A stretch of 8,311 nt of DNA, taken from assembly GCF_006345805.1 (NCBI RefSeq), contig NW_021828434.1, forward strand, positions 1 through 8,311, read 5' to 3'. The translations under genes were made by a program, and so were the position numbers. Below, piece after piece: positions 1-8,311 of this stretch. The notes beneath the pieces were generated by a model, which did no database searches, had not been told where the DNA came from, and saw only the letters and a program-made list of their open reading frames with translations. How positions within the stretch are numbered: position 1 is the first letter of the stretch; the number at the start of each line of letters is the position of its first letter. Source of the DNA: Octopus sinensis (taxonomy: Eukaryota).

Positions 1-26
1 GAAAAAAAGACGTATACAGGTCAAAT

Positions 27-345
27 ATCATCATCATCATTATTTGACATCTAATGTCCATGCTGGCATAGGTTGAACGGTTTGAAGAGGGCTGGTAAGC
101 TGAGGGGCTGCACCAGACTCCAGTCTGATTTGGCATGGTTTCTACGACTGGATGCCCTCCCTAATGCCAACCAATCCAAGAGTGAAATGGGTGCTTTTAC
201 ATGCCAGTTGCATGACACCAGTATCTGTCACTACTACAATTTCACTTGACTTGATGGGTGTCCTTCTCAAGCACAGCACATTGCCAAAGGGCTCTGTGAG
301 GCCTAAGACTCAAAAGGTGCTTTTTGTGTGACACCGGCATCAGCC
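27..345 (-). mobile_element. Ceph-domain-like SINE (or RTE-related 3' end), diverged copy 1
   Basis: (CAT)n at 27-40 is a (GAT)n 3' tail on the minus strand. ctggatgccctccctaatgccaacc is the reverse complement of the GGTTGGCGTTAGGAAGGGCATCCAG-type motif. Colinear with the copy at 404-800. Family name is from recall; the right boundary is approximate. Confidence 0.75.
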
Positions 346-403
346 ATGGACTGGTCTAAAAGTTTGTTTAATCCTTAAAGCTTTCAGTACTTTGAATTAT
401 TTT

Positions 404-800
404 CATCATCATCATCATCGTTTAACGTCCGTTCTCCATGCTAGCATGGGTTGGACGGTTCGACCAGGGATCTGGAAAGCCAGAAGGCTGCACCAGGCTC
501 CAGTCTGATGTGGCAGCGTTTCTACAGCTGGATGCCCTTCATAACGCCAACCACTCCATGAGTGTAGTGGGTGCCTTTTACGTGCCACCGGCACAGGTGC
601 CAGGCGAGGCTGGCAACATCCATGATTGGATTGGTGCATTTTACGTGCCACCGGCACGGAAGCCAGTCGAAGCGGCGCTGGCATTAGCCACGTTCAGATG
701 GTGCTTTTTACATGCCACCGGCATAGGGATCACAACTGCAGTTTCCATTGATTTTGATGTTGGTGTACTTGACTCAATGGATCTCCTCAAGCACAGGGTC
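404..800 (-). mobile_element. Ceph-domain-like SINE, copy 2
   Basis: (CAT)5 tail at 404-418, then cgtttaacgtccg...ccatgctagcatgggttggacgg and ctggatgcccttcataacgccaacc. Homologous to 27-345. Confidence 0.8.
570..724. repeat. Internal tandem repeat of the SINE: three 25-bp GGTGCnTTTTACrTGCCACCGGCAy units, period 63 and 67 bp
   Basis: Units at 570-594, 633-657 and 700-724. Units 1-2 contain the hairpin GTGCC-acc-GGCAC; unit 3 has ATGCC-acc-GGCAT. The intervening segments are homologous to each other. Confidence 0.85.
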
Positions 801-835
801 GAAATGGTGTTTCATGTAGAATAATACCAATTGCT

Positions 836-841
836 TTTATT
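836..841 (-). promoter_or_regulatory. Candidate polyadenylation signal AATAAA
   Basis: Plus-strand tttatt, about 47 nt downstream of the candidate stop. The hexamer is common in AT-rich DNA. Confidence 0.3.
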
Positions 842-887
842 GTCGAACCTACGCAGTTTCATAATAGCACATGAAGGACAAAATGCT

Positions 888-979
888 TCACAGCTTTTCA
901 TCTATCTTCATGTTCCGTGTTGAAATACTGCCAAGATCAACTTTCCTTTCATCTTTGTTGGGGTTAATGAAATGAGCAC
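888..979 (-). CDS. Probable terminal coding exon of an unidentified gene: phase-1 start, xAHFINPNKDERKVDLGSISTRNMKIDEKL*
   Basis: Minus-strand acceptor ttaattcaattacattgaccttaatgtttcacAG|GT (AG = plus 980-981). 29 sense codons, then TGA at 890-888. AATAAA at 841-836. Unique sequence in a repeat-dominated window. No protein family recognised. Confidence 0.5.
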
Positions 980-1325
980 CTGTGAAACATTAAGGTCAAT
1001 GTAATTGAATTAAAATTTCAGGCCTTGTGTTTCTTGTAGAAAGGATTATTATATTTCTCTAATTCTGTGCTCTTTTCCTTCCCCATACAGCAAAAATAGC
1101 TATAGCTATTCCAAAAGTCTGTCAAATTTTCTTTAGATTAATTATTTTCTTAATTTTCTTTATAATACTTATGTTCTTGCAAGCATTATGATATAATCTG
1201 ATCATAATTTGTTTTTAAATCTAATAATACACACTCAGAAACAGAGATTAAATCGCTGTAAGTAGTATTAACATATAGGAAATAGATTTAATCCCTTACC
1301 TAGTTTAACACTGCCGCCTGGTCCT

Positions 1326-1829
1326 AGAGGAATCCAGGGGAAAAAAATGTCACTGGAAAAAAGTCACAGAAAAAATATTGAAGGAGTGGCTGTGTGGTAA
1401 GTAGCTTGCTAACCAACCACATGGTTCCGGGTTCAGTCCCACTGTGTGACATCTTGGACAAGTGTCTTCTGCTATAGCCCCGGGCCGACCAATGCCTTGT
1501 GAGTGGATTTGGTCGATGGAAACTGAAAGAAGCCTGTCGTATATATGTATATATATATATGTATGTGTGTGTATATGTTTGTGCCCTAGCATTGCTTGAC
1601 AACCGATGCTGGTGTGTTTACGTCCCCGTCACTTAGCGGTTCGGCAAAAAAGAGACCGATAGAATAAGTACTAGGCTTACAAAAGAATAAGTGCCGGGGT
1701 CGATTTGCTCGACTAAAAGGCGGTGCTCCAGCATGGCCGCAGTCAAATGACTGAAACAAGTAAAAGAGTAAAAGAGAGAGTCAGTAAAAAGGTCACCGGA
1801 ATTACGCATTTTTCCTGGAATATTCCTCT
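1326..1829. mobile_element. Degenerate MITE-like element with AAAAA(n)GTCAC subterminal repeats, interrupted by SINE copy 1
   Basis: agaggaat-ccaggggaaaaaaatg (1326-1349) is an imperfect inverted repeat of catttttcctggaatattcctct (1807-1829). The GTCAC motif recurs at ~1349, ~1363 and ~1792. No clean TSD. Confidence 0.5.
1383..1780 (+). mobile_element. tRNA-derived SINE with internal (TA/TG)n tract, copy 1 (octopus OK/OR-type by recall)
   Basis: A-box-like TGGCTGTGTGG 1387-1397; B-box-like GGTTCAGTCCC 1430-1440; microsatellite ~1541-1580; 3' body with tail aagtaaaagagtaaaagag. Highly similar to the copies at 1999, 3012 and 7409. Confidence 0.9.
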
Positions 1830-2174
1830 TAGTCATCAACATTAAAGAATACTGAATATATATATATGTAGTGCCACGATATAAAGTGTTTTCAATCTGT
1901 ACATGTCATGTATTGTCAATAAATGGCAGACTATAGTTTTTTTTTGTTTCCTTGTTTTATACTTTGCTTAAGAAGTTGAATAATGGAGGATTTTTTCACA
2001 GGAGTGGCTGTGTGGTGCAAGTAGCTTGCTTACCAACCACATGATGCAGGGTTCAGTCCCACTGCGTGGCACCTTAGGCAAGTGTCTTCTACTATAGCCT
2101 CGGGCCGACCAAAGCCTTGTGAGTGGATTTGGTAGACAGAAACTGGAAGAAGCCCGTCAAATACATGTATATAT

Positions 2175-2350
2175 GGCGTAACTTCGGTATAGGTACCGGA
2201 AATACCCGATACATTTCAAGAAAGTGTTTTTTTTATATATATGGGGGGTTAGGGTTAGGGTTAGGGGTGGGAGAAAAGGGTTTCTGTTATATTCAGAAAT
2301 GTAAACAAAGCCACTTCAGGTACTTACGGTACCTATACCGAAGGATCGTC
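2175..2350. mobile_element. 176-bp MITE with a central (TTAGGG)3 array
   Basis: Perfect 16-bp inverted repeat ttcggtataggtaccg (2183-2198) / cggtacctataccgaa (2327-2342), inside a ~36-bp imperfect inverted repeat (29/36). Flanks gtatatat / atatatat (7/8). Confidence 0.8.
2246..2266 (+). repeat. GGGTTAGGGTTAGGGTTAGGG telomere-like array, G-quadruplex-competent
   Basis: Exact 21-mer with four G3 tracts. Further G tracts lie on either side (2243-2271). Confidence 0.9.
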
Positions 2351-2369
2351 ATATATATGTGTGTGTGTG

Positions 2370-2416
<47 letters not shown>

Positions 2417-2775
2417 TTTGTGTGTCCCACCAACATCGCTTGACAACCGATGCTGGTGTGTTTACGTCCCCGTAACTTAGCGGTTCGGCAAAAGAGACCG
2501 ATAGAATAAGTACTAGGCTTACACAAAATAAAAGTCCTGGGGTCGATTTGCTCGACTAAAGGCGGTGCTCCAGCATGGCCGCAGTCAAATGACTGAAACA
2601 AGTAAAAGAGTATATGTATAAAGCCATCACTTAAAAATTGTGTACAAGTCATGTAGTGTTAGTTAATGACTGTTTGTTTTGTAAATAATAATAATACTCA
2701 GCTTAAAGCTTAATATCATCACAGGAAATTATTTTTGCTTTATAAACTTTAATTGTTTAAAGTATTTAAATAAAA

Positions 2776-2844
2776 TGTGACTTTTTTTTCCTATCTAAAA
2801 TTGTGATTTTTTTCTGTGATGTTTTTTTTTTTCCAGACATCGCC
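2776..2844 (-). mobile_element. Right end of an AAAAAGTCAC-repeat element
   Basis: Reverse complement reads GGCGATGTCTGGAAAAAAAAAAACATCACAGAAAAAAATCACAATTTTAGATAGGAAAAAAAAGTCACA, which resembles ctggaaaaaagtcacagaaaaaat at ~1353-1376. Confidence 0.5.
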
Positions 2845-2848
2845 ATAA

Positions 2849-3649
2849 CTTTGTTTCCGCATAACTTTCAGAAAAATAGATATTTTCTAATGAAATTTTC
2901 TACAAATTCGTTTCCGATGGTGTAGATTAAGATTATATCGATATTTAATGTGGAAAAAAAAAAAGGTGGTCATGCACACATACATACTAACACACATCAA
3001 ACACACACATAGGCGCAGGAGTGGCTTGCTTACTAACCACATGGTTCCTGGTTCAGTCCCACTGCGTGGCACCTTGGGAAAGTGTCTTCTACTATAGCCT
3101 CGGGCCGACCAAAGCCTTGTGAGTGGATTTGGTAAACGGAAACTGAAAGAAGCCTGTCGTATATATGTATGTGTGTGTATGTTTGTGTGTCTGTGTTTGT
3201 CCCCTAACTTGACAACCGATGGTGGTATGTTTACGTCCCCGTAACTTATCGGTTCGGCAAACGATAGTGATAGAATAAGTACTAGGCTTCTAAAGTCCTG
3301 GGGTCGATATGCTTAACTAAAAAGGCGGTGCTCCAGCATGGCCACAGTCAAATGACTGAAACAAAAGAGTAAAAAAGTACACATACACACACAGAGACAG
3401 ACAAACAGGCAGGCAGGCAGACATACAGATAGACACAATGAAACCCGAAATTTTGAAAAACATTGTGATGTATGCAAGGATGTATGAATGCACATCAGTT
3501 GGGGATTTAGGGCTGTTTTTATTTTTGTTTTTTTTGTTTTCATTCTAAATTCCGATAAAATCATAATCTACACCATCTGAAAGGTTGTTTGAAGAAAATT
3601 TCATTAAAAAGTATCCATTTGTCAGAAAGTTATGACGAAACAAAAGTCG
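2849..3649. mobile_element. Foldback/MITE copy with ~105-bp inverted arms (2849-~2950 and 3546-3649) and a SINE in its centre
   Basis: The module ctttgtttccncataactttcagaaaaatggatattttntaatgaaattttct...tttcagatggtgtagatta occurs on the + strand and again as its reverse complement. The centre resembles 5770-5895. Confidence 0.8.
3012..3378 (+). mobile_element. SINE copy 3, with a 15-bp deletion through the A box
   Basis: ggcgcaggagtggc is joined directly to ttgcttact. The rest is colinear with copy 1. Low-complexity acacat on both flanks (3005-3010, 3379-3384) may be a TSD. Confidence 0.9.
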
Positions 3650-4339
3650 GAAACTTGGTTATTGAAAATAGAAATGTGAAGAAATTTGGGGAAAAACATA
3701 TTTTCCACCTGTGGTAATTCAGAGTAGTTGTCGATATTTTCACTTTCAGTTTGTCGACATAAAACCGAAAGAATGACGAAATTGGATGTTCCGGATTTCA
3801 AGATACAAGAAGGAGTTTTCAAAATGGGAAAATAAATTGGCTGATTTCTTTGCACAGGCAAGAAAAAATGCATTTAGAAAAAAAATTACAAGGGAACAAA
3901 ATCCAAGAAGAGAAAGTGAGAGAGACAACCAACGGCAAATTGTAACTATGCAAAAAATAAAAACCAGAAGGTGATGGTCATGGTTGGAACGCTTTTTAAA
4001 CAAGATCTGTGTATTAGGAAAACAGTGAGATATTTAAGGAATTCAACGTTATGAAATAACAGCTAAACCCTCTGTTTAAAGCAAAAACTTTTAAAAAGCT
4101 ATTTTAAAAAATAATGAAATAGAATCGGAAATTATCTAGTGCACCAAAGGCCGTAATTTCTTGGGATCTTTGTGTTTAAAGCAACGTATATTGCGATTCT
4201 GTAGGGAAAAAGTGGGGATTGAGAATGATTTTTAACCCCACCTGTCCACCAGTTTTCCGTAATTTTCCAGTTTTAATTTCTTTTGAAAACTTTTTGAAGT
4301 ATTCGTTTTAAATAATAGAGAATATGATCCATCAAAAAT

Positions 4340-4605
4340 ATCATCATCATCAACCCGTGGACATTACTGGCTCGAGATTTTGGCCTTATTGGACCGGTTA
4401 TCCGGAGTTTTTTTTCCGTGGAATACAAGTGACCAAGATCACAAAATTCCCTCTGAACAGGAGACCTGTCAATTGCAAGGTTACTTATTTTTGCCAGCTG
4501 TGTTGACTGGAGCAACATGAAATAAAATGTTTTGCTCACGGACACAAACCATCTTGCAATCGTGAGTGAGCGCAACACTTTGGCCATTAGGCCATGCGTT
4601 TTCAC
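4340..4605 (-). mobile_element. Different tRNA-derived SINE, possibly with a Meta-domain-like body, and a (GAT)n tail
   Basis: Minus-strand head GTGAAAACGCA-TGGCCTAATGG (A box). No B box is visible, so it is probably deleted. Body gagcaaaacattttatttcatgttgctccagtc; tail atcatcatcatc at 4340-4351. The domain name is from recall only. Confidence 0.65.
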
Positions 4606-4676
4606 CTTTCCAAAAACATACGTAACATAAATCTGGTGGGGGGAAGGAGAAATAAATAAAATATTGCTGCTGCAAA

Positions 4677-4798
4677 GGCGCAGGCCTGGTTGTGCGGTTT
4701 CCTAAACACATAGTTTCGTGTTCAGTCTCACTGCATGGTACCTTGGGCAGGTGTCTACTATATAGCCTTATGAGTGATGGACAGTAATTAAAAGAAGA

Positions 4799-4829
<31 letters not shown>

Positions 4830-4913
4830 GTAAAAAAATATACAAACTGGGACAAGAACGTGAAACATTTAGAAGACGACACAAAAAACACGGACGGGAC
4901 ATTCGAAGCCCTC

Positions 4914-4982
<69 letters not shown>

Positions 4983-5180
4983 TGTATTTAAGCATGTATG
5001 TACGTGTCCCATCACTGCTTGACAACCGGTCTTGGTTTGTTTATGGCCCTATAATTTAGCGGTTCGGCAACAAACACCAGACTTTTGAGAAGAAAAAAAT
5101 TAGCACTGGGGTCGATTCGTACGACTAAAACCCCTCCAGGCGGTGCCCCATATAGCCACAGTCAAAGATAGAAAAAGAGG
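4677..5180 (+). mobile_element. Older, diverged SINE copy 4, with an expanded microsatellite and an inserted island
   Basis: Head ggcgcaggcctggttgtgcgg...gttcagtctcactgcatgg. 3' half gcttgacaaccgg...ttagcggttcggca...ggggtcgattcgtacgactaa...ggcggtgcccc. Confidence 0.75.
4799..4982. repeat. (TA)n, 90-bp island, (TA)n, (GA)n compound tract
   Basis: TA 4799-4823, island 4824-4913, TA 4914-4932, GA 4933-4982, read directly. Confidence 0.9.
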
Positions 5181-5293
5181 TAAACTTGTGCCCTCGCCTC
5201 GACTTTGTTTCCTCATAACTTCCAGAAAAATGGATAATTTCTTTTAATGAAACTTTCAACAGATACGCTTCAGATGGTGTAGATTCCCATTAT

Positions 5294-5382
5294 AGCGGAG
5301 GTATACACCACCCGTTTTCGACGTAACAAAAACCCTAACCCTAAACCCTAAACACCGGGTGTACCTATTCTTTACTTTCGCC
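5294..5382. mobile_element. ~89-bp mini-MITE with a central CCCTAA-type array
   Basis: Absent from the mirror arm at 6446-6470. TSD cccattat(a) at 5286-5293/4 and 5383-5390/1. Inverted repeat aggtatacacc / ggtgtacct. Array aaccctaaccctaaaccctaa at 5331-5351. Confidence 0.7.
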
Positions 5383-5954
5383 CCCATTATATCGGAATTT
5401 GATGTGGGAAATTAAAAAATTGTCCGTGAAGAGAGTCAAAACTATTGAAAAGGTTGCAAAACGCAACGAAAATTTTAGGAAAATAAAAATAAGATAAAAA
5501 AGTGGAAATTTTACCGGTGAGTGTGTCAAATAATAAGGCACAAAAAGAAAACGACTCTCCCCAGACACAACAGAATATGCTTCAACACACGAACTCAAAT
5601 AAAGAATCTTGCAAACCAAATCCAAAAACGAAATGTCCGTGAAAAGGTTTCGGAAAATTCACATGGGTTGGATTTGTTTCCTCATAACTTTCAGAAGAAT
5701 GGATATACCTTGGTAAAATTTTCTACAAATCCCTTTCAGATGGTGTAGATTACGAATATATTAGAAGTTTAATATGAAAATTGGTGAACTCGCACACATA
5801 TATACTGACTCAAATTACATATTTCTACAAAATGAAATTTGAAATTTCGAAAAAAAAATAATGTGTGCCAATATGTGCTCACTTTTTTTTTATATATATA
5901 TTAAATTCCGATATCGTAATCTACACATTCTGAAAGATATATATAAGAAATTTC

Positions 5955-6334
5955 GGAAAGACTTCCGCCCGTACCCACTTTTCTCCCAAATTAATTAAAA
6001 AAAATTTTTTGTCAAAAATCCCCGTTTTCGGATACGGAGGTTCCGGAAAATTGCCAAAAATCGTCATTATGAAAATTTACCTCCCCCCTTTCCCACTCAA
6101 CTTCTTCAATTTTAACTTCTTTCCGCAACACTAACCCTAAAACCCTAACCGTAAGTACAGAACTGTTTGGGAATTTTTGTCCGAATCCTGATATCCGTAT
6201 TTTTCCGCATATTTAGAAAAGAAAAAATTCTTAAAAAAAAAAATTGGAAATACTTCTACCCGTACCCCACCCCCAGCCATTTTCTCCCTTAAAAAAAGGG
6301 TGGTTTTTGGAAGGGGACGGGCGGAAGTCTTGCC
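5955..6334. mobile_element. 380-bp MITE with GG...CC termini, 8-bp TSD and central CCCTAA-like repeats (Merlin- or MULE-type signature)
   Basis: TIR GGAAAGACTTCCGCCCGT / GGCAAGACTTCCGCCCGT (17/18). Exact TSD gaaatttc at 5947-5954 and 6335-6342. Removing the element restores a continuous host module. ctaaccctaaaaccctaacc at 6131-6150. Confidence 0.9.
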
Positions 6335-6748
6335 GAAATTTCATTAAAAAATACTAAATTCTCTTAAAGTTATAGGGAAACAAAATCGATTCATGTGAAT
6401 TTTCCGAAACTGCTTTACGTCACACGCGGAAAGTATTTTTCACAAAATTCCGATATAATCGGAATTCTAAACCGTCTGAAGCGTATTTGCAGAAATTTTA
6501 ATTGAAAAGAACCCATTTTTTCTTAAAATCATAAGGAAACAAGATCGGGCCGGGTGGGGCACTTGTGTAGGTATACCAAAGAGGGAAAAAAATAGAAAAA
6601 TTTCGGGAAAAAATGAAAAGCGAGCGCCTGTAATTTTATGAAATGCGATGAGTTGGCATTTAATGCTTTTCTTACAATTAATTAATAATTAGTCAGAAAT
6701 AGTATTATTACAAGTCACCTTTTAATTATGAACCTGAGAGCGGGTGTT

Positions 6749-6870
6749 TTTGTTGTAGTTTAGCCACAGGTCGGTCAGTCACTCCTCGTTATGATCAAAG
6801 TCGTTCCAGTTTTTAGTATATTGTCATTTATTCAGAGACACAACAGTATATCTAGGACATTATCGAAATG
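6749..6870 (-). mobile_element. Degenerate 3' fragment of another SINE/LINE with a (CAA)n-like tail
   Basis: ttgttgtagtttagccacaggtc reads gacctgtggctaaactacaacaa on the minus strand, resembling a recalled octopus repeat end. No second copy in the window. Confidence 0.4.
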
Positions 6871-6891
6871 TTTGAAAGTTTTTCTCTGTCG

Positions 6892-6894
<3 letters not shown>

Positions 6895-6934
<40 letters not shown>

Positions 6935-6949
6935 GTGTGTGTGTGTGTG

Positions 6950-6980
<31 letters not shown>
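6895..6980. repeat. Compound microsatellite (TG)n(TCTG)n
   Basis: Read directly; one TT interruption near 6933. Confidence 0.95.
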
Positions 6981-7061
6981 AGAATGTGTGTTAGTGCGTG
7001 TGTGTGTTGAAGTAATGTTCTTTGATGTTCATCCTACAATTACAATTAAGTCTAACATAAT

Positions 7062-7255
7062 TTTTTAACTTGTTCCAGTCGCTGGACTATGGCCATGCTG
7101 GAACACTGCATTCAAGAGGGTTCAGTCAAGCAAATGGACCCCAGCCTGGTACTTATTCTGTCGATATCTTTTGCTCAACTGGTAAGTTACAGGGACGTAA
7201 ACAAGTATCACCAGTAGTCACGCGGTGGAGAGTAACACGCACGCACACACACACT
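7062..7255 (-). mobile_element. 3' half of an old minus-strand SINE related to copies 1-5
   Basis: acttgttccagtc...ggccatgctggaacac...gtacttattctgtcga...taagttacagggacgtaaaca is the reverse complement of the SINE 3' body. Confidence 0.8.
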
Positions 7256-7258
7256 CAT

Positions 7259-7407
7259 TATATATATATATATATATATAAATATATAATATATATATAT
7301 ATATATATTATATATATTTATAATATATATCGCCACATACATATATATATTCTTATATATATATACTATATAGATATATATATATATTATATATATATAT
7401 ATATATA
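7259..7407. repeat. Imperfect ~150-bp (TA)n tract
   Basis: Read directly. Confidence 0.95.
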
Positions 7408-7408
7408 G

Positions 7409-7735
7409 CACTGCGTGGTACTTGGGCAAGTGTCTTCTACTATAGCCTCGGACCGACCAAAGCCTTGTGAGTGGATTTGGTAGACGGAAACTGAAAGAAG
7501 CCCGTCGTATATATGTATATATTTATATGTATGTATGTGTGTGTATATGTTTGTGTCTGAGTTTGTCCCACCGACATCGCTTGACAACCGATGCTGTTGT
7601 GTTTACGTCCCCGTAACTTAGCGGTTCGGCAAAACAAACAGATAGAATAAGTCCTGGTGTCGATATGCTCGACTAAAGGCGGTGCTCCAGCATGGCCACA
7701 GTCAAATGACTGAAACAAGTAAAAGAGTAACGAGT
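7409..7735 (+). mobile_element. SINE copy 5, 5'-truncated (no A or B box)
   Basis: Begins at cactgcgtgg and is close to copies 1-3. The segment between the two agaataagt repeats seen in copy 1 is deleted. Confidence 0.9.
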
Positions 7736-7746
7736 ATGTATGTATG

Positions 7747-7813
<67 letters not shown>

Positions 7814-7818
7814 TATCG
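7733..7818. repeat. (GTAT)n then (TA)n tract
   Basis: Read directly. Confidence 0.9.
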
Positions 7819-7914
7819 GCTATATTACGGTATATATACTTTATAAGTGACAATGATTCATACGCACATATCGGTTAGTAGTGTATGTATGTATATATGT
7901 ATGTATGTATGTAT

Positions 7915-8057
7915 GACGGGCTTCCACACAGTTTCCGTCAAACAAATTCCCTCCCAAGGCATTTGGGTCAGCGAAGGCTGTAGAAGACACTGAAGATGCC
8001 ATTCAGTGGGACTGAACTCAAAACCATGCGACTGGGAAGCAAAGCTTTTTTATACAC
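7915..8057 (-). mobile_element. 5' half (tRNA-like head) of an old minus-strand SINE
   Basis: gacgggcttcc...cagtttccgtc...gtagaagacact...cagtgggactgaactc...accatg is the reverse complement of the SINE head. Confidence 0.8.
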
Positions 8058-8311
8058 CTTATATTATATATATATATATATACAGAAACTTGTATTTCTG
8101 ATCAAAAATGTTTCACAATATTCTTGCTAATTGTTTACCTTTATGAATCCCAAGTTTTCTGAACTTTCTTTTTTCTTTCCATTTCCGCTACAAACCGATT
8201 GTGTGCATGCGTTAGTGTCACTTATAAAATTGAACAATCTCGGAAAAAAATAGTGTGTATATATATATATCGCTCTGTGTGTGTGTGTGTCGCTTATTGT
8301 ATATATTTGCA

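Follow-up and report, generated by a model that had tools for sequence, protein, structure and literature searches.

The window analyzed here, the whole of an AT-rich, repeat-dense stretch of animal DNA of 8,311 nt (Octopus sinensis contig NW_021828434.1, positions 1 to 8,311 of the forward strand), contains three candidate MITEs (miniature inverted-repeat transposable elements), each of which carries a short array of the telomere motif TTAGGG close to its midpoint. We call them el1 (2175–2350, 176 bp; array TTAGGG on the plus strand), el2 (5294–5382, 89 bp; TTAGGG on the minus strand) and el3 (5955–6334, 380 bp; TTAGGG on the minus strand). Each was inserted as a unit with an 8-bp target site duplication (TSD). 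Their inverted termini start with GG, and they encode no protein. They behave like MITEs of the Merlin superfamily and most likely are such. The explanation that in our judgment best accounts for the data, and that we consider probable when all its parts are taken together, is that these are Merlin MITEs of at least two families, that the array is inherited within the el3 family, that the elements are mobilized in trans, and that the array is derived from telomerase.

Self-comparison of the window and alignment of each insertion with copies of its host repeat in the same window show that el1, el2 and el3 are clean insertions, each of which breaks an older repeat that has intact copies in the window. 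The host of el1 is the TA/TG microsatellite of a short interspersed element (SINE) of family A (copy 2000–2612), and el1 appears as a gap against three SINE copies that are intact at this site (1382–1776, 3020–3379 and 7409–7730); diverged and reversed copies of family A are also present in the window. El2 lies within a family B repeat and el3 within a family B repeat in reverse orientation. Alignment with five further copies of family B shows each of the two elements as a gap, and intact copies lie at 2840–2997, 3529–3644, 5673–5815 and 6437–6548. The TSD of el2 is a perfect 8 bp (CCCATTAT at 5286–5293 and 5383–5390, or 9 bp counting the next A), and that of el3 is also a perfect 8 bp (GAAATTTC at 5947–5954 and 6335–6342). 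For el1 the candidate TSD (GTATATAT at 2167–2174 and ATATATAT at 2351–2358) agrees at 7/8, and a TA run makes its length ambiguous. Because GAAATTTC is palindromic, the terminal inverted repeat (TIR) of el3 looks longer than it really is.

MITEs are short elements of less than ~800 bp that have TIRs and a TSD and encode no protein, and el1–3, at 89–380 bp, fit this structure. Their four stop-free translations, when joined, have no match at E<=10 in a collection of 5.8 billion proteins, the el1 open frame (the only one through el1–3) has no homologue among 1.84 billion representative proteins, and the window gave no hit in scans for tRNAs and Rfam families. We also considered solo TIRs that happen to flank a pre-existing interstitial telomeric sequence (ITS), and this is rejected, since the intact host copies show that the whole unit, array included, is one insertion. 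A sequence-only reading of this DNA had proposed that three MITE-like DNA transposons were inserted here, with ends in GG, TSDs of 8 bp and arrays at or near their midpoints, and it is confirmed in each of these respects.

The three arrays differ in length and in regularity. That of el1 (2249–2266, plus strand) is (TTAGGG)3 between G runs, that of el2 (5331–5351, minus strand) reads CCCTAA, CCCTAAA, CCCTAAA, and that of el3 (6129–6154, minus strand) is degenerate and reads CACTAA CCCTAA AACCCTAA CCGTAA. Their centers lie 5, 3 and 3 bp, respectively, from the midpoints of the elements, and the joint chance of such central placement in el1, el2 and el3 is ~1.4e-4 if arrays are assumed to be placed uniformly within elements. 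When the whole window was searched for TTAGGGTTAGGG with <=1 mismatch, five (TTAGGG)2-like matches were found, all inside el1–3, where 0.05 are expected; none of 200 shuffles reached five, so chance co-occurrence of arrays and elements is rejected. TTAGGG is the sole experimentally determined cephalopod telomere motif (PMC13218726).

Termini were scored as the number of matches among 22 anchored positions, of which ~6 are expected by chance. The left TIR of el1 (2175–2198, plus strand; GGCGTAACTTCGGTATAGGTACCG) and its right TIR (2327–2350, minus strand; reverse complement GACGATCCTTCGGTATAGGTACCG) agree at 18/22 and include a 17-nt core, CTTCGGTATAGGTACCG, that is identical at both ends. The TIRs of el3 (left, 5955–5976, plus strand, GGAAAGACTTCCGCCCGTACCC; right, 6313–6334, minus strand, reverse complement GGCAAGACTTCCGCCCGTCCCC) agree at 20/22. 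In el2 the intact GGCG terminus is the right end, and the left end is degenerate or truncated (AGCGGAGGTATACACC vs GGCGAAAGTAAAGAATAGGTACACC) and was left out of the position-by-position comparison. Four termini begin with GG, namely both of el3, the left one of el1 and the right one of el2, and the degenerate starts are GA (el1 right) and AG (el2 left). With the el2 left end excluded, G1, T9 and C11 are common to all compared termini, and G2 and T10 are each missing once (A at position 2 of el1 right, A at position 10 of el2 right). We also note that the left TIR of el3 is repeated inside the element in direct orientation (6246–6268, plus strand; GGAAATACTTCTACCCGTACCCC), a copy overlooked earlier, which together with the el3 right TIR makes 6246–6334 an 89-bp mini-palindrome. 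Folded as single-stranded DNA, el1 forms a hairpin with the array in its unpaired center (z -4.9), el3 folds weakly (z -2.2), and el2 folds no better than shuffled sequence (z +0.8). The el1 array and its G-rich borders are flanked by an 18-bp direct repeat (2221–2238/2275–2292, 15/18). This repeat may have been left behind when the array was inserted, or may be fortuitous, the sequence being rich in T.

El1 and el2 are linked through their termini only. The left terminus of el1 and the right terminus of el2 match at 16/22 (P ~1e-5 for this one anchored comparison), which is exactly the figure that had been claimed. A motif said to be shared by el1 and el3, GGnnnnACTTCnG...GTACC, is indeed present, but it amounts to just 9–10/22 overall, and el3 has only G1, G2, T9, T10 and C11 in common with the el1 and el2 termini. 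Once the arrays are removed, the families resemble one another only weakly (z up to 4.2), in low-complexity T/A-rich stretches. The terminal sequences point to at least two families, el1 and el2 with related termini and el3 separate, so that the proposal of the sequence-only reading that all three elements are related survives for el1 and el2 and goes too far for el3, whose match to Merlin termini is also at chance level (see below). Because interior similarity between the families is so weak, the arrays either have been kept much better than the interior or were gained more than once.

Published Merlin TIRs start with 5'-GG and the TSDs are 8–9 bp, and there are 191 Merlin proteins in O. bimaculoides (PMC8101967). 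With the octopus Merlin protein KOF79200.1 (from PMC8101967) as query, octopus Merlin transposases and then their genomic loci were retrieved. The additional DNA examined comprises ~181 kb of Octopus loci, a small sample that is partly biased to loci with Merlin genes, and copies of the el families were counted in the window and in this ~181 kb. The Octopus Merlin transposase P0084 corresponds to Pfam DDE_Tnp_IS1595 (PF12762). It is encoded within an 8.7-kb Merlin that occurs at two O. sinensis loci (L124, 4266–12986; L126, 4253–12988) and one O. vulgaris locus (L125, 3887–12938), with 99% identity across the three. It has TIRs of ~355 bp and a further internal inverted repeat, its termini are GGCGATGTTTCGTATG... 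and GGCATAGTTTCGGTTG... (also given as GGCGATGTTTCGTATGTCGTAG... and GGCATAGTTTCGGTTGTAGTAG...), and its TSDs are perfect, 8 bp long and different at each of L124, L125 and L126 (GCAAATCT, CAAGGCTT and GAAACTTT); this element appears to have been recently active. Its termini match those of el1 at 11–14/22 (P ~3e-4 for 14), the 14/22 being the left TIR of el1 against the Merlin right end.

A complete Merlin of 1061 bp (L133, 1–1061, a Logan contig from run SRR22455140) was assembled as the same element in four sequencing runs. It encodes a DDE_Tnp_IS1595 transposase of 299 aa, and its TIRs are perfect over 30 bp (GGGTACTTCTACAGAACAGCCCACCCATGG). Its TIR, GGGTACTTCTAC..., has TACTTCTAC in common with the internal TIR copy of el3, and an ACTTC motif stands beside the GG end in this Merlin, in el1 and in el3. 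Other contigs with Merlin homologues (L129 and L130 from ENA, L132 and L137 from Logan) have no similarity to Octopus DNA, and L132 contains nothing comparable.

From these comparisons the Merlin assignment appears well supported for el1 and el2 and is the best available one for el3. Elements of the hAT superfamily have 8-bp TSDs and short YARNG-type TIRs. In Mutator the TSD is usually 9–11 bp, and the TIRs are often long. The TSD length of el1–3 fits hAT, but their termini (GGCG... and GGAAAG...) are not C/TA-initiated. A Mutator-like origin, which had been suggested alongside Merlin, does not fit: the TSDs are 8 bp at el2, at el3 and at three loci of the related autonomous element, and the transposase is DDE_Tnp_IS1595, not MULE. 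Merlin fits el1–3 better than Mutator or hAT, and of the earlier proposal of Merlin or a Mutator-like group the first half stands on the GG ends, the 8-bp TSDs and the el1 termini, with el3 as the weak member. Two findings count against Merlin. The termini of the 8.7-kb Merlin match those of el3 at only 6–8/22, which is the chance level, and among the loci recovered there is no autonomous Merlin with termini identical to those of el1, el2 or el3. Both findings would be expected if the elements belonged to some other superfamily with 8-bp TSDs (hAT, P, Zisupton or a short-TSD Mutator-like group). We consider this very unlikely, since neither the YARNG termini of hAT nor the 9–11 bp TSDs of Mutator fit, el1 reaches 14/22 against real Octopus Merlin termini, the complete Merlin at L133 has ACTTC next to its GG terminus as do el1 and el3, and GG termini with an 8-bp TSD make up the signature published for Merlin (PMC8101967).

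Within the el3 family the array belongs to the interior of the element and is inherited with it, its position and orientation being kept in two independent copies. The second copy, which is decayed, lies at O. sinensis locus L128 (7095–7666; 76% identity over 200 bp, E 1e-33) and is flanked by an 8-bp TSD at 6/8. The two copies stay aligned without a shift of register all the way from the left TIR, across the array and into the right half, and the L128 array occupies the same alignment column in the same orientation, with ~96 bp of degenerate units vs 26 bp in el3. Since column and orientation are kept and length differs, the array in this family has been inherited with microsatellite-like changes in length. 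An el2-like core at the O. vulgaris locus L125 (17196–17231, E 1e-5) reads CACCCGGTG-GTTAGGG-TTTTTGTTGC..., with one unit in a small hairpin loop. No further copy of el1 was found in the ~181 kb of Octopus DNA.

Not every Merlin carries the motif. Locus L128 also contains a 472-bp Merlin MITE (10778–11249) with 44-bp perfect TIRs (GGCGATGTTTCGCTTGTCG...) and an 8-bp TSD at 7/8, directly after a truncated Merlin transposase open reading frame (P0023), and it has a CA/TA-rich microsatellite in place of the telomere array. There is no telomere array in this MITE, in the 8.7-kb Merlin or in the 1061-bp Merlin at L133. The positional conservation of the array that had been supposed is real in el3, the one family with a second copy to compare, where L128 has it in the same column and orientation, but it does not extend to the L125 core with its one unit or to the Merlin elements with none.

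A different arrangement is found in O. bimaculoides, where a 730-bp palindrome (L127, 5565–6294) lies 1.5 kb downstream of a Merlin transposase gene. At its center is a head-to-head degenerate (TTAGGG)n...(CCCTAA)n, and a third, partial copy of the arm is present at 4505–4612. Four further loci (L001, L002, L123 and L131; ~81 kb, reached via SINE-derived "hypothetical proteins") contain no copy of el1–3 and no ITS apart from one array at the end of L002. That array, TCCTAACCCTAACCC (20391–20414), is at the cut end of this O. vulgaris locus, so that its right context is not visible and it is not scored. In the window and the ~181 kb together, all 5/5 ITS sites with readable flanks (the three in the window, L127 and L128) are central in inverted-repeat structures. 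A search of metagenomes with the 15-mer AAGACTTCCGCCCGT matched 120 loci, all of them single chance matches with no extension, and this pattern is too short to be of use.

By the explanation that we prefer, DDE transposases of Merlin, of which octopus has unusually many, would move el1–3 in trans by cut-and-paste, and each transposition would drop a short ITS at the new site. The array would have arisen when a progenitor copy suffered a double-strand break at or near the center of its palindrome, through breakage of a hairpin or cruciform tip or at an internal-deletion junction, and telomerase added repeats there; the broken copy would then have been rejoined and amplified. If just one of the broken ends was extended, the array would run in one direction, as in el1–3 and L128; if both were, the arrays would stand head to head, as in the L127 palindrome. 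Telomerase action at the center would thus account for the central placement, for both types of array and for their recurrence in families that are unrelated inside, and it assumes no function for the motif. In vertebrates, telomerase inserts short ITSs at sites of double-strand-break repair (PMC8537989; reviewed in PMC6410037).

Several observations weigh against this explanation. The recovered sequences show no telomerase signature, that is, no flanking TERC-derived bases and no orthologous array-free site. The "family-wide" array rests on n=2, as the loci yielded a single additional el3-family copy and a single el2-like core. Because that el2-like core has a single TTAGGG unit, the array may have grown by slippage from a chance hexamer. 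The palindrome at L127, in which neither a TSD nor GG/GG termini can be seen, may be no transposon, and the additional Octopus sampling is biased toward loci that carry Merlin genes.

The same arrays could go back to a single ancient acquisition, in which an ancestral Merlin-type element already had the array and slippage kept it recognizable as the interior diverged, with neither telomerase at the center nor a function. Some details of the sequences point this way. When the arrays are placed in the TTAGGG orientation, the best-matching termini of el1 and el2 lie to one and the same side of it, and the upstream halves of el1–3 are slightly more alike in the same than in the reverse orientation (z 3.4–4.2). 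Two variant units, TTTAGGG and TTTTAGGG, are found again and again in el2, el3, L127 and L128, and array length differs between homologous copies as it does in a microsatellite. Yet what similarity there is between the families beyond the termini is low-complexity T/A-rich sequence, a neutral array of 2–3 units should decay with the interior whereas el1 has three perfect units, and there is no array in the 8.7-kb element or in the L128 MITE, the two Merlins whose termini come nearest to those of el1. We regard such a single origin as somewhat unlikely.

A core maintained by selection would also explain why the motif is found in several families whose interiors have otherwise diverged, and why its placement is exactly central. 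The motif could be a TRF/Myb-like or POT1-like binding site that aids transposition or protects the excised element, or it could act as a G-quadruplex or loop element, or as a telobox-like regulatory site co-opted by the host. The el1 array with its G-rich flanks has >=4 G-runs; el3 has only two intact GGG runs, however, which makes a conserved G-quadruplex unlikely. The arrays vary in length from 1 unit at L125 to ~14 degenerate units at L128, and active-looking Merlins do without the motif (the 8.7-kb element with its 99% identity across species, as well as the MITE whose 44-bp TIRs are perfect). A selected core is in our opinion improbable.

The L127 palindrome, with its head-to-head center, and the arms of el3 and of the L128 copy, which are inverted copies well past the TIRs, suggest a further possibility, namely that these MITEs were born at healed ends. 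Telomerase would have capped an internally broken transposon, and sister-chromatid fusion or fold-back would have made a perfect palindrome, a good substrate for transposase, whose center then decayed asymmetrically. The absence of a TSD at L127 speaks against it, as does the sequence of el1 and el2, both of which have non-palindromic sequence between arms and array, with the el1 array flanked by the 18-bp direct repeat; in addition, sister fusion normally gives a dicentric chromosome and not a small element. We rate a birth of this kind as improbable to the same degree as a selected core.

If telomerase action at the center of the palindrome is nevertheless correct, it may be carried one step further. 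Short ITSs in octopus could be made and spread mainly by palindromic Merlin-type MITEs, with telomerase seeding them repeatedly at breaks at the symmetry center, or alternatively at the break that gives rise to a new palindromic MITE. An asymmetric spacer would then steady the palindrome, and transposition would disperse mini-telomere seeds. This broader proposal we think unlikely, if less so than a selected core or a healed end. No description of a link between telomerase, palindrome fragility and MITE birth was found in the literature searched.

Telomere repeats and mobile elements are known to meet in other organisms. The TBE and Tec elements of ciliates are Tc1/mariner-like DNA transposons that carry the host telomere repeat at the tips of their TIRs; in el1–3 the repeats are central, the tips are GG...ACTTC and the superfamily would be Merlin. 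Bivalve pearl, DTC84 and Helentron-associated repeats consist of a flank, a central tandem repeat of variable unit number and a second flank, a plan resembling that of el1–3, but in place of the telomere motif they have satellite monomers or tetranucleotide microsatellites at the core, and many of them are related to Helitrons and are not TIR/TSD elements. In rotifers, the Penelope-like Athena elements and the Terminons are mobile elements that contain host telomere repeats; these are reverse-transcriptase elements that join chromosome ends, without TIRs and without an 8-bp TSD.

Merlin and its MITEs (Feschotte 2004, as summarized in PMC8101967) resemble el1–3 in 5'-GG ends, 8–9-bp TSDs, imperfect TIRs of >20 bp and short non-autonomous derivatives, but a central telomere-type array like that of el1–3 is not described in the Merlin literature searched. 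The short ITSs inserted by telomerase in vertebrates (PMC8537989, PMC6410037) are likewise short internal arrays, of 2–25 TTAGGG units. They are one-off events at unique sites, whereas the array of el1–3 is inside a mobile element, at its center of symmetry, and is copied along with it. That mobile elements might transpose telomeric repeats is mere speculation in the review PMC6410037. We found no matching description of a MITE or other transposon with an internal telomere repeat in the papers that full-text searches returned, in PMC8101967 or in the 2026 O. vulgaris repeat annotation, and the el1–3 families themselves may already be catalogued in Repbase or Dfam.

The host repeats of the window have features of their own. 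In 61 kb of O. vulgaris DNA there are 19 matches to SINE family A, the main SINE of the window, with identities of up to 94%, and open reading frames through the SINE-like repeats of the window match O. vulgaris "hypothetical predicted proteins" at 72–75% identity. One family A copy, at L123 (15420–15520), has an insertion of ~95 bp in its microsatellite, in the same region as the el1 site; this insertion has no TIRs and contains a single TTAGGG-like unit. Family B forms inverted pairs (2840–2997(+)/3529–3644(-), 5638–5815(+)/5880–6419(-) and 5181–5400(+)/6437–6569(-)), one of which is seemingly nested in another, and this suggests elements of the foldback type. The hexamer TTTCCG/CGGAAA is ~7x commoner in the window outside el1–3 than in the 61 kb of O. 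vulgaris DNA. A further repeat family is represented at 27–206 and 405–587 (to ~731), with 80% identity between the two copies. A 128-aa open frame (438–824) through this family also matches O. vulgaris "hypothetical predicted proteins", and those gene models are probably repeat-derived.

ITSs are recombination-prone, fragile sites that are able to seed new telomeres, and the route by which they are dispersed is debated. El1–3 provide a concrete group of elements, defined by TIRs and TSDs, that carry the host telomere motif as a central core and that would place an ITS at each new site when they move. Octopus genomes are rich in Merlin and in repeats, and chromosome-scale assemblies exist, so the question can be tested computationally. 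Should the central position prove to reflect the action of telomerase at palindrome centers, it would bear both on the origin of MITEs and on the stability of long palindromes.

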